Assembly (NCBI GenBank): GCA_002269645.1
Contig: NIVC01004535.1
Location: 1 to 42,879, forward strand
Length of the DNA stretch: 42,879 nt
Reading direction: 5' to 3'
Source: Macrostomum lignano
Lineage: Eukaryota
Under the pieces are notes generated by a model. The model searched no databases, had not been told where the DNA came from, and saw only the letters and a list, made by a program, of their open reading frames with translations. A program made the position numbers and the translations under genes. Of the stretch, positions 22,150 to 29,271 are shown in pieces. Each line of letters starts with the position of its first letter. Position 1 is the first letter of the stretch.

Positions 22150-25100
22150 ATGAGCGGAGGGCAGAGAAACAGTCTCCAGGTGCCGGTGGCTCCGGGGGAC
22201 ACAACGCCGCTACCAAATGCTCCCGGGACCGTGTCGAGAATGTCTGACGACGCCAGTTCTTCAAGCTTCCCAATGGCTTCTTCGACTAAGGCGGGAACGA
22301 CCGAGATTGACATGAAGATTCGCGGACTGATGGCTAAACAGGGGAAAGAGACTTTCCGGTTTCTGCGATGGTGCAAAGGGAATCCACTGAGTGAGACCGG
22401 TGAGTCAGCTTGTTTGAGCTCTTACTAGGGATGTGCGAAGGTTGGTAAACTTTTTTACCTCAAGGGCCGGAGAATAGAGATGTCAGATGACATGAGAGAG
22501 AGAGAGAGAGAGAGAGAGAGAGAGAGAGAGAGAGAGAGAGAGAGAGAGGCGAGGGAGACGATCATGGAGAGAATGGAGCTGAAAAGAGCCATCAACCGGA
22601 TTTTTATTGTGCAGTTTAAAAGGACCAGCTGGGCATCTAAGCATGTGGAGTTTGCCAACCCCTGATGACAGACTCTCTTAAAGCTTCATCAAGTCAAGAT
22701 TAATGTTAGCTCTTGACTTTTGAATCCGTTAATTTCATACCCATTAACTAAGGCAAGCGACAGCAGATGATCAAGCTGATGTTCATGACCCTGGTGCCTG
22801 TACTCGCCTTGACAATCATCACCGTGCTCAGCATGGTGAAAGTGCAGCAGTCCAATGCTATGCGAACGAAAATTCGCGACATGATCCGATTCAGCATGGA
22901 AACAGGCACCGTGATTCATTTTCTGCAACGAGAGCAGGACATGACGGCGCTGCATCTGACTAGTCAGGGTGCCGAGACGAGACTGTTTCTGCGGGAGCGC
23001 TATCCTGCCACGGACACGGCGCTGGACAAACTGTCAATGTGGCCCGAGAAGTCGTCGGACGGCAACAGCCTGAGCCAATTCGGTTCGGTGAAAGATTTTC
23101 AAAAGTTTCTGAGGAAGCATCGCATGGAACTGAATTCCGTCAAGACTAAGCCTTACGATGTGAGTTTGGCATATAATCTATGGTTTTAGGCTGCACAAAG
23201 CAGTGTTAAAGAGAGAGAGAGAGAGAGAGAGAGAGAGAGAGAGAGAGAGAGAGAGAGAGAGAGAGAGAGAGAGAGAGAGAGAGAGAGAGAGAGAGAGAGA
23301 GAGAAAGGAGATAGAGAGAGAGGAGAGAGGAGAGGAGAGAGGAAAGAGGAGAGAAAAGAGAGAGACAGAGAGAGAGAGGCGATGGGTTTAGTCCAAAAAC
23401 CACTAAAAGTTGCGATTATACCAGGACGTCAACGCTCACGTTCCCTAGAAATTGATTTGAAGGCCCGACTTCGATTACAAATGTATCGGCGAGTTACGAA
23501 CTTTTTTAGCTCTTAATTGACAATATTAATTGACAATACACTCGGGCTTTCAATATTTATACGGAAAGATGGAAAATTTCATTTATAAAGACATTAAAAA
23601 TACAGAAAAACTATGACTTTTATTTATTCTAGTGCGTTTCCCTGTCTCCAAAGGAATTTTATCTGAATTTAAGTCGATAAACTAGTGATATTGTTGATCA
23701 TATTGATCGTGTTGATCTTTGTTATTATAGCAGAGGATACGATAATAATAATAATAAATTAATTGGGCCAGATGTGCAACCGACAGCTCATCCACAGCTA
23801 TTGCACCTGAAGGCTGCGTACGGCTGTTCAGTCCAAGGAGTGGGGGGTCGCCACACACAGCCTCAATTACCCCAGCTAATGCTGGCACCCATTTTACAGC
23901 TGGGTGAACTGAAGCAATGCAGAGTTAAGTGTCTTGCTCAAGGACACAGATTGCTTCAGTGGAATCAGGGCTCGAACCCCTGACCTTCAAGTCGTGAGTC
24001 CGAGGCTCTGACCACCAGGCCACAACCCCTACTAAAGGACACGAAATCGTCCATAAAAAGCCTTTTAAAAGCGAAATTGAGCCTTCAAAAATTGTACATA
24101 TAGAACTATCACGTCTTGACGTAACTTCTAACGGTTCTTTGTTTAACCCGATGGTGGGAGCTATTGATAGATACTCGAGCGAGTGCCATCTATCATATAC
24201 TACACTCAATTCTTCGAATACTTTGCACTGAGCCGTGACGCACAAAAAATCACGTGTCTAACATTGCTGAATCCCGCAGGAGATCTCATTCTACACAAAA
24301 ATGATCCGCAGCTTCATAGATATAGTCTACAACTACATCCAGGAGTCCAAGGATGGCGACCAGTGGCGCGAGATGGTCGCCTACCAGCTGTTGATCATCT
24401 CCAAAGAGGACATGGGTGTCGAACGAACCCTTGGCGGGGTGTTCTTTGCCCAGGGTCAGTTCGACACCTTCACGGACTACCTGTGGTACCAGGAGAAGCA
24501 CACGGTTGGTGTCGGCAATTTCGCCGCCTCCAAGCGATTCTCCGAGCTAGTTGGCGTGGTATTCGAGGAAGAGCGAGACAAAGCTTCCAGCAATTTTTCC
24601 GTATCGATTGATCAGATGCGACAGCAGATTAGCCGGAACAATGCCAGCTGGGTGTCGCTTGAGATGTCCACCTGGTGGTTTGATAACATGACCGTTTTTA
24701 TTGACATCATGTTCCAGGTGCAGCTCAGACTGGTGAGTTTGAGGACTGATTTTTGACTAGGCTGGCACGTCTTAGTCAAAGGATCCGCGATAGCTTTTCT
24801 GGCGCCTACCGTATGCAAAATCTGGCATTCCTGACACCCGATTGGCGTCTCTGACACCCGATTGGCGTCTCTGACACCCGATTGGTGTCTCTGACACCCG
24901 ATTGGCGTCTCTACACCCTATTGGAGTCTCTTGGAGTCTCTGACACTCGATTGGCCTCCCTGTCCCTGACATCCGATTGGCGTCTCTGACACCCGATTGG
25001 CCTCTCTGACACCCGATTGGCCTCTCTGACACCCGATTGGTGTCTACACCCTATTGGAGTCTCTGACACTTGATTAGCCTCCCTGACACCCGATTGGCGT

Positions 25101-28100: not shown

Positions 28101-29271
28101 GGAGATTCCTCACCTGCCAGGCCAGCGCATGACCCTTCGAGCTGGGATGCACAGCGGACCCTGCGTTGCTGGAGTTGTAGGGATTAAGATGCCGCGCTAC
28201 TGCCTGTTCGGGTCCACAGTGAACACGGCCAGTCGCATGGAACAGACTGGGGAAGGTGGGTCTTTCTGGTGCTGCAAATTTCTAGATGTGCGCTCGTGGA
28301 TTACTAAATTTTAGATTTTTGTATTTAGATTTCTAGATTTTTAAGATTTCTAGAAGTATATTTCTATTGATGCAAATTTCCAGATGATGTAGATTTTGAT
28401 TATATAGATTTCTAGATTTAGATATCTATGATCTACTCGTAGATTTCTAGATTTTGTAGATTTCCAGATGATGTAAACTTTTAGAATTAGTTAATTCCTA
28501 GATTTGTAGAATTTCTATATGTACGTTTTTAGATTTAGGTTTCTAGTTAACTGGGATAACTGGGAAGCTATATACATGTACGAATTAAATGTCTGTGATT
28601 TTGTATAGAAAATGTGGGTTATTTTTCAAGATACTGCCAGCGTTTCATGGCGTCTAATGCGTAACTATAGCAACAAGAAGCACCCATTCAACATGTCTAA
28701 CAGCAAACATAAATCCTCAAAAAAACAATTCCAGCCGGAAAGCTGCACATGAGTGAGCAGAGCCGCAACTACCTTATCAACGATACTAAATACAAAATTC
28801 AACCGAGAGGAAAGGTTGAGATCGCTGTGAGCTCCAGTACTATAACTTATTAAATTGCATGTACTGTAGCTTAGGATGTTCAGCTCCACTATATAGATAG
28901 TATTTGACTTTCAGTTTTCTCAATCTAAACTTTGGGATTTATTGAAATATGTACTTTTAAAAGAAAACGTGCCTTAAAAAAGAAATGTTCATTAAAAAGA
29001 AGAAGTACGTACTTTTAAACGAGAATGTACTTTTAAAGGAAATGTACTATTAAAAGGAAATTTTTTAAAAAGAAAATGTATTTTACTGATCTGTTGCAAT
29101 CCGCAGCCTGGCAGGGTGGAGTGCACCTACTGGCTGACTGAGAAGGAAGGGCTCATTTTGAGTTTCAAATGCTGGCCAAAGTGCATCGAAGATCCAACAG
29201 AGTTTCTGGCTGAGCTGGCCGAGGCTAACAAGGCAAGTCGATTCTGTCGAGCTCAATCTCGTCTGAACTGA
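22150..29271 (+). CDS. NIT-domain-containing transmembrane guanylyl cyclase (NIT-GC): TM - NIT sensor - TM - coiled coil - class III GC domain, no kinase-homology domain; 688 aa (701 aa with the alternative last exon)
   Basis: Exons 22150-22399, 22753-23159, 24280-24732, 25573-25929, 27796-27901, 28019-28255, 28735-28826, 29107-29271; all phases match. TM1 [24 protein letters not shown] motifs [15 protein letters not shown] and [21 protein letters not shown]2 [22 protein letters not shown]. Coiled coil [21 protein letters not shown]. Cyclase motifs [50 protein letters not shown] (Glu/Cys guanine-specifying pair). Confidence 0.9.
22494..22548. repeat. (GA)n microsatellite, NIT-GC intron 1
   Basis: Direct reading. 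Confidence 0.97.
23211..23378. repeat. (GA)n microsatellite with degenerate tail, NIT-GC intron 2
   Basis: Direct reading. Confidence 0.97.
23741..24028 (-). mobile_element. tRNA-derived CORE-SINE, copy 2 (NIT-GC intron 2)
   Basis: Reverse complement has A box TGGCCTGGTGG, B box GGTTCGAGCCC, then TGTGTCCTTGAGCAAGACACTTAACTCTGCATTGCTTCAGTTCACCCAGCTGTAAAATGGG (closely resembles the MIR-type CORE TGTGACCTTGGGCAAGTCACTTAAC...CTCAGTTTCCTCATCTGTAAAATGGG). Its 3' body matches 14780-14905 and it ends in a (TTA)n tail. Confidence 0.85.
24828..25455. repeat. 20-bp minisatellite (CTCTGACACCCGATTGGCGT)n with a 77-bp higher-order unit, NIT-GC intron 3
   Basis: The diagnostic CTATTGGAG variant recurs at 25051, 25128, 25205, 25302 and 25379 (spacings 77, 77, 97, 77). 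Confidence 0.95.
25944..27747. repeat. (TTAG)n microsatellite, ~1.8 kb, filling NIT-GC intron 4
   Basis: Direct reading with TTAA/TTAC variants. Confidence 0.98.
28300..28545. repeat. Degenerate TAGATTT(C) repeats, NIT-GC intron 6
   Basis: Many TAGATTT/CTAGATTT words in an AT-rich stretch. Confidence 0.65.

Follow-up and report, generated by a model that had tools for sequence, protein, structure and literature searches.

A complete NIT-domain guanylyl cyclase gene in the flatworm Macrostomum lignano, with a glutamine at a pocket position of its putative nitrogen-oxide sensor

[quoted passage not shown] A survey followed these NIT-domain guanylyl cyclases (NIT-GCs) across many phyla in 2020, and the prior literature also includes work by Moroz et al.; Trichoplax is credited with 12 NIT-GCs. 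Functional data exist for a single member, NIT-GC1 from an annelid, Platynereis dumerilii, where Jokura et al. described 15 NIT-GCs (bioRxiv 10.1101/2023.08.02.551600; eLife RP91258). A nitric oxide (NO) donor raised cyclic GMP (cGMP) in COS-7 cells expressing NIT-GC1 only when the NIT domain was present, and the protein is required for NO feedback in ciliary photoreceptors (bioRxiv 10.1101/2023.08.02.551600). Here we describe a NIT-GC gene from the flatworm Macrostomum lignano, located at positions 22150-29271 (+) of contig NIVC01004535.1 (assembly GCA_002269645.1). By the window we mean the whole stretch of DNA analyzed, 42,879 nucleotides in length. An earlier note on the window, made from its letters alone, judged the family to be likely uncharacterised in this lineage, and this was borne out: flatworms receive no mention in the main text of two key NIT-GC papers. 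Our literature search on M. lignano with NO or cGMP found only a trematode study, which reports on nitric oxide synthase (NOS) (PMC10728431).

We are highly confident that the product of the window gene is a NIT-GC: a receptor guanylyl cyclase spanning the membrane twice. The gene has 8 exons and 688 codons plus a stop, with a reading frame that is open across all eight exons and GT/AG boundaries at all seven introns. Its ends at 22150 and 29271 are exactly those given by the earlier note, and the elements named there (a NIT domain between transmembrane helices, a coiled coil, and a guanylyl cyclase domain) were all found at the coordinates assigned to them. The 688-residue protein is collinear with 21 annotated NIT-GCs, including those of nemerteans, molluscs, and hemichordates, from a juxtamembrane 'CxGNPLTxxGKR' through a C-terminal 'CxPxC'. 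Because the alignment to these 21 homologs runs end to end, no exon is missing. The window gene is a complete addition to a known family, and its architecture itself is not new.

The domain content of the protein was established with Pfam. The NIT profile (PF08376) matched residues 137-374 at 82.8 bits (cut-off 24.9; E = 6.5e-23), covering profile positions 2-238 of 239, and Guanylate_cyc (PF00211) matched residues 461-645 at 196 bits (E = 4.6e-58). Both scores are far above chance. Ahead of the cyclase domain, residues 417-454 matched HNOBA through only the last 38 positions of that profile, which correspond to the coiled-coil linker. There was no Pfam match anywhere in the 688 residues to the H-NOX haem domain (HNOB), nor at E ≤ 1 to a kinase-homology domain (PF07714, PF00069) or to ANF_receptor (PF01094), in line with the claim that kinase-homology and H-NOX domains are lacking. 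Membrane segments were assigned by hydropathy, taking 19-residue stretches above 1.6 on the Kyte-Doolittle scale. Only two regions exceeded this value, at about residues 92-112 (TM1; 22776-22838; peak 2.36) and 389-409 (TM2; 25627-25689; peak 2.6), and they bracket the NIT domain as had been anticipated. The stretch between TM1 and TM2 contains three N-glycosylation sequons and no cysteine. With this topology, the cytoplasm must hold both the N-terminus and the catalytic half, and the NIT domain must be extracellular.

These elements are distributed over the exons as follows. Exon 1 (22150-22399), from the ATG at 22150 to a GT donor at 22400, encodes the start codon and the cytoplasmic N-terminal region (residues 1-84), which holds a conserved C-x-G-N-P-L-x-x-x-G immediately ahead of TM1, the counterpart of 'CxGNPLTxxGKR' in the 21 homologs. 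Exon 2 (22753-23159), with AG/GT boundaries, carries TM1 and the N-terminal half of the NIT domain, whose Pfam match starts at residue 137 (22911), together with its first motif, 'LQREQD'. The second half of the NIT domain lies in exon 3 (24280-24732), which contains the second motif 'GVERTLG' and the sequons N324, N340, and N355. Exon 4 (25573-25929) encodes the end of the NIT domain, TM2, the signaling helix or coiled coil (residues 415-455; 25705-25827), and the first part of the cyclase domain. The coiled coil thus lies right behind TM2 and leads into the catalytic domain, an order that the earlier note had described. The core of the cyclase is encoded by exon 5 (27796-27901) and exon 6 (28019-28255), and its C-terminal strands by exon 7 (28735-28826). 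Exon 8 (29107-29271) supplies the end of the cyclase ('TYWL'), a short tail, and the stop codon. The tail motif 'KCWPKC' is a conserved C-x-P-x-C, at which homologs carry 'LPCMPGC'. Alternative splicing to regain the 'KGKG' that usually precedes 'TYWL' was rejected, as no in-phase GT/AG combination produces it.

We next consider the sensor. The region between the transmembrane helices is predicted to be an all-helical NIT domain of about 275 residues, composed of two helical bundles with a NasR-like fold. An AlphaFold2 model of the ectodomain was wholly helical, with a predicted local distance difference test (pLDDT) of 89.3 and a predicted TM-score (pTM) of 0.87. When this model was compared to the PDB with Foldseek, the sole significant match was NasR (4AKK; E = 1.4e-5; TM 0.75), with the next structure at E = 0.1. 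A sequence profile of the ectodomain matched NasR at E = 2.2e-7 and aligned both arginine motifs, LQxER and GxER, with those of NasR. Both the model and the profile were built from the same 19-sequence ectodomain alignment. A profile was needed for significance, since a single-sequence search of PDB sequences with the ectodomain reached NasR at only E = 0.12. Agreement with the NIT hidden Markov model (HMM) and with a NIT structure had been put forward as the tests of the ectodomain, and both matches were obtained at the scores given above.

The catalytic domain resembles those of well-studied receptor cyclases. Residues 415-649 match GC-A over its residues 786-1024 (E = 1.6e-72) and also match GC-C (E = 1.1e-67), and motifs such as FSDIVGF and ETIGDAY align to GC-A's own. 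By their roles in GC-A, RetGC-1, and soluble guanylyl cyclase, Asp474 and Asp518 bind metal, Glu514 and Cys586 specify guanine, and Asn593 and Arg597 stabilize the transition state. All six, which the earlier note had listed by function, are present in one chain: Asp474 in exon 4 (codon 25882-25884), Glu514 and Asp518 in exon 5, and Cys586, Asn593, and Arg597 in exon 6. A complete catalytic set in a single chain suggests competence for homodimeric catalysis. Exon 6 also encodes an unusual Ser590 (codon 28213-28215) in 'FGSTVN', at a position where 21 homologs ('FGDTVNTASR') have 16 Asp, 4 Glu, and 1 Asn.

Judged from database matches and a tree, the window protein stands closest to other metazoan NIT-GCs, and not to bacterial NIT proteins or to ANPR-type guanylyl cyclases. 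The best 22 database homologs all combine NIT, HNOBA, and cyclase domains and come from nemerteans, molluscs, hemichordates, and one annelid, whereas for ANPR-type cyclases the match is limited to the third of the protein that holds the cyclase. Nemertean NIT-GCs are 54-55% identical and gastropod NIT-GCs 45-46% identical over 89-94% of its length, and the NIT-GC of the annelid Owenia is 33% identical. A neighbor-joining tree with 100 bootstraps grouped the window protein with nemertean and gastropod NIT-GCs at 26-51% support, which offers a rough placement only, and positioned an M. lignano paralog just outside of this weakly supported group. A profile search returned 235 cluster representatives of the family with a threshold of E ≤ 1e-30, a number that rose to 3098 with E ≤ 1e-10. 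Hence, the statement that NIT-GCs are described in only a few invertebrates holds for functional work but not for distribution, given the 2006 prediction, the 2020 survey, and these 235 representatives.

The sensor departs from its relatives at one position of its putative pocket. The first NIT motif reads 'LQREQD' in the window protein and 'LQxERD/G' in 21 of 21 close homologs. The differing residue, Gln145 (codon CAG, 22935-22937), occupies a column with Arg in 125 of 131 aligned family representatives and Gln in one, and the NIT-GC profile aligns it with the Arg in 'LQCER' of NasR, namely Arg50. In a NasR-based sensor, R50A and R176A each abolished the nitrate response, and the primer sequence confirms the identity of the arginine (PMC9581486). 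The equivalent of NasR Arg176, Arg268 (24424-24426; exon 3), is kept within 'GVERTLG'; all 20 aligned homologs share this Arg, as do 137 of 149 representatives. Having both pocket arginines (LQxER and GxER) is a conserved feature of the family with no formal criterion attached, and the window protein has Arg268 with Gln at residue 145. Because Gln145 falls at a pocket position, the window copy may have weakened or altered ligand binding relative to an Arg version found in another M. lignano record.

That record is UniProt A0A1I8FQW1 (P0174; 323 aa), which derives either from this locus or from a nearly identical copy. It joins the last exon of the upstream SLC7 gene to NIT-GC exons 2-3, corresponding to window positions 20813-24732 (+), and ends after the NIT domain. 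The entry is a frameshifted chimera named 'PBPe domain-containing protein', and our gene model corrects the public annotation by revealing the UniProt entry at the NIT-GC locus to be a misnamed fusion with a transporter. Outside of frameshift artefacts it is identical to the window protein except for Arg at site 145. Gln145 is not a fixed trait of the species because A0A1I8FQW1 of the same locus carries Arg, and it may be an allele, a difference between duplicate copies, or an error in one assembly. The change from Arg to Gln at codon 145 amounts to one G-to-A transition if Arg is encoded by CGG. The database search with the NIT-GC itself gave no near-identical entry, the best matches being the nemertean proteins. 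A second M. lignano protein combining NIT and cyclase domains, UniProt A0A1I8GKN0 ('guanylate cyclase', 715 aa), is a paralog with 44% identity.

Taking these results together, we consider it reasonably probable that a ligand of the nitrogen-oxide class acting on the NIT domain raises cGMP through the helix and the cyclase. By family precedent, the signaling helices and cyclase domains of two chains would pair, giving a homodimer whose two active sites are symmetric. The ligand would sit in a pocket between the two NIT bundles, and its occupancy would shift TM2 and the signaling helix. This signal would then reach the cyclase dimer and cause more GTP to be converted to cGMP. Because of the analogy with Platynereis NIT-GC1 and NasR, a small nitrogen oxide appears to be the most likely ligand class, which would include NO or an NO product, nitrite, and nitrate. 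The ligand could stem from a source such as microbial nitrogen cycling in the sediment habitat, rather than being an NOS-derived transmitter.

Every platyhelminth examined, M. lignano among them, is reported to have lost NOS (PMC10728431). Given this reported loss, the Platynereis model of feedback from NOS to NIT-GC is not simply transferable, and a nitrogen-oxide ligand, if there is one, is probably exogenous or formed non-enzymatically.

Several observations weigh against the proposed mechanism. First, Gln145 stands in place of the Arg50 that NasR needs for its nitrate response, and Ser590 replaces the usual Asp, Glu, or Asn of 'FGDTVN'. Second, the NIT-GC1 assay cannot tell NO from nitrite or nitrate (bioRxiv 10.1101/2023.08.02.551600), and direct ligand binding has been shown for no animal NIT-GC. 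Third, the topology is a prediction from hydropathy and the need for cytoplasmic GTP. Finally, the animal is reported to lack NOS as a physiological source of nitrogen oxide for the receptor (PMC10728431). The earlier note had proposed a candidate receptor linking NO, nitrite, or nitrate to cGMP. This proposal fits the HMM match, the structure match, the homologs, and the published view of the family, while Gln145 weakens the case for straightforward nitrate or nitrite binding.

Some of these observations would also be expected if the protein were a NIT-GC by descent whose ectodomain does not sense nitrogen oxides. The NIT domain would then serve as a dimerization or scaffold module or bind another small molecule or a protein, and the cyclase would be constitutive or controlled from the cytoplasm. 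The loss of the Arg50 equivalent, the reported absence of NOS from flatworms (PMC10728431), and the fact that no animal NIT-GC has been shown to bind a ligand directly all favor such an ectodomain, as does the observation that about 5% of family representatives likewise lack Arg at column 145. However, the remainder of the NIT signature is intact (Q142, E144, W248, E267, R268, R333, and 'WFDNMT'), an Arg version exists in another M. lignano record, and the only tested relative, NIT-GC1, responds to an NO donor only with its NIT domain in place. We regard a non-sensing ectodomain as unlikely, although it is the alternative that best survives.

The Arg version raises a further alternative, namely that the window holds a weakened or decaying allele or duplicate in which R145Q disables ligand sensing and the Arg version is the working copy, M. 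lignano being a species with duplicated chromosomal material. This would account for A0A1I8FQW1 matching exons 2-3 exactly, bar frameshift artefacts, yet having Arg, as do 125 of 131 representatives. The change from CGG to CAG is also a single transition at what would be a CpG. Nevertheless, all eight exons are open, the splice sites are canonical, and the catalytic residues are intact. A single substitution is no evidence of decay, and an error in one or the other assembly would explain Gln145 equally well. A weakened or decaying copy strikes us as quite improbable, whereas sensing of a nitrogen oxide by the window protein, possibly with altered binding, remains our preferred reading.

The roles of the catalytic residues bear on one more alternative. 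RetGC-1 becomes an adenylyl cyclase when its Glu/Cys pair is swapped. One might take the catalytic domain for an adenylyl cyclase or a pseudo-cyclase without activity because PF00211 spans adenylyl and guanylyl cyclases and Ser590 is atypical, but this is very improbable considering that Glu514/Cys586 is the guanine-specifying pair of receptor guanylyl cyclases, both metal-binding Asp are present along with Asn593 and Arg597, and the best PDB matches are GC-A and GC-C (E = 1e-72 to 1e-67), with adenylyl cyclases scoring far lower (E = 1e-43).

NIT-GCs are widespread but barely studied animal receptors, with NO, nitrite, and nitrate as candidate ligands. M. lignano is a free-living laboratory flatworm amenable to RNA interference and transgenesis. 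A complete gene in a tractable animal that is reported to lack NOS offers a clean setting for NIT-GC function without endogenous NO synthesis, in a phylum where the family is undiscussed and public models are fragmentary or misnamed. In addition, the Arg/Gln pair, at a site on which nitrate sensing by NasR depends, provides ready natural variants for the ligand question. The interest of the locus rests on its host without NOS and on this natural variant, as the architecture will be no surprise to specialists. More speculatively, the NIT-GCs of a phylum without NOS (the window gene and at least one paralog) might be receptors for environmental nitrate, nitrite, or NO from microbial nitrogen cycling in intertidal sand. 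The original role of animal NIT-GCs would then be external chemosensation rather than detection of an NOS-made transmitter, and the Arg/Gln difference would be a switch of affinity or selectivity. We give this broader scenario only a small chance of being correct.

The window sequence is eukaryotic, with many introns and satellites. Bacterial contamination, which a NIT domain might suggest, was rejected on account of the seven spliceosomal introns, the animal-type cyclase, and the flanking M. lignano genes. A search of the window for a second NIT-GC copy or a tandem cluster came up empty.

Directly upstream of the NIT-GC lies a multi-exon SLC7 (LAT / y+LAT-type) amino-acid transporter gene at 14326-21216 (+), with exons that are 96-100% identical to an M. 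lignano UniProt protein (P0300, A0A1I8GK...). These matches mark the window as DNA of M. lignano or of an almost identical strain. Further upstream, a single-exon open reading frame (ORF) of 332 aa at 10518-11513 (+) has a G+C content of about 55%, a hydrophobic N-terminus, and one internal hydrophobic segment. This ORF has no Pfam match. Its 10970-11513 segment is matched at 100% identity by a stretch of an M. lignano UniProt model, and a second chimeric M. lignano model (P0352) fuses the same 10970-11513 segment with SLC7 exons. The window begins with exons of a giant twitchin/titin-like muscle protein at 1-7190 (+), which encode fibronectin-III and immunoglobulin I-set domains, then a kinase domain at 2520-4469 (Pkinase E = 2.6e-55), and after it more I-set domains at 5085-6716. 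A search with its kinase exon mostly returned generic Ig/FN3 repeats at ≤ 50% identity over most of the query, along with an M. lignano match at 66% identity over 29% of the query, which by itself does not establish the source taxon as the SLC7 exons do. Downstream of the NIT-GC, a gene for a PRP38-family pre-mRNA splicing factor occupies about 34399-36554 (-), with pieces of the PRP38 domain at 36315-36554 and 34399-35049. The C-terminal tail of this PRP38 gene may be encoded by an ORF rich in Arg/Ser and Arg/Asp at 31620-32024 (-).

Unusually dense arrays of minisatellites and microsatellites occupy most of the intergenic and intronic space of the window. Within the NIT-GC, a (TAGT)n microsatellite of about 450 copies and 1.8 kb (25945-27747; 95% matches by Tandem Repeats Finder) is wholly intronic and fills most of intron 4, where it causes a block with 26% G+C and strong GC skew. 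Intron 3 contains about 32 copies of a 20-bp minisatellite, CTGACACCCGATTGGCGTCT, at 24831-25455, and GA/AG dinucleotide runs are found in introns 1 (22494-22548) and 2 (23210-23378). Other satellite arrays lie at 8200-8980, 13600-14100, 15570-16500, 16800-17200, 18170-18780, 19340-19700, 20000-20780, 21242-21624, 30683-31160, 32000-33700, 33940-34400, and 34860-36160. Such arrays yield long spurious ORFs (e.g., 'SIYLSIYL...') and strong local skews in strand composition, and none looks coding.

Among known systems, the nearest sequences to the window protein are the NIT-GCs of nemerteans and gastropods, including LOC135497034 and LOC135497132 of Lineus longissimus, LOC141908443 of Tubulanus polymorphus, and those of Haliotis, Patella, and Babylonia. 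They match the window protein in domain order, 'GNPLT..GKR', and 'CxPxC', but have Arg at the Gln145 column and Asp at the Ser590 column, and are themselves predictions labeled 'uncharacterized protein'. Within M. lignano, A0A1I8GKN0 is a distant paralog whose model misses part of the cyclase.

Outside of the NIT-GC family, NasR of Klebsiella oxytoca (PDB 4AKK), a NIT-ANTAR nitrate/nitrite sensor, has the sensor fold and the second pocket arginine in common with the window protein (R176 = R268). In contrast, NasR is a soluble protein of bacteria whose output is an RNA-binding ANTAR domain; it is about 18% identical and has R50 where the window protein has Gln145. GC-A/NPR1 and GC-C share the coiled-coil linker, the catalytic domain, and identical catalytic motifs, and homodimeric catalysis is expected in both cases. 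However, ANPR-type receptor cyclases (GC-A to GC-G) have an ANF-receptor ectodomain and a kinase-homology domain, both of which the window protein lacks, and GC-A and GC-C have one transmembrane helix rather than two. Soluble guanylyl cyclases have an N-terminal H-NOX (HNOB) domain and share with the window protein only the HNOBA coiled coil.

NIT-GC1 and NIT-GC2 in Platynereis dumerilii form a further close system. Like the window protein, they have a NIT domain (PF08376) beside a predicted transmembrane region, followed by a cyclase domain, without H-NOX. The two differ in their hosts, as Platynereis is an annelid with NOS in presynaptic partner cells whereas the window protein belongs to a flatworm, in a phylum reported to be without NOS.

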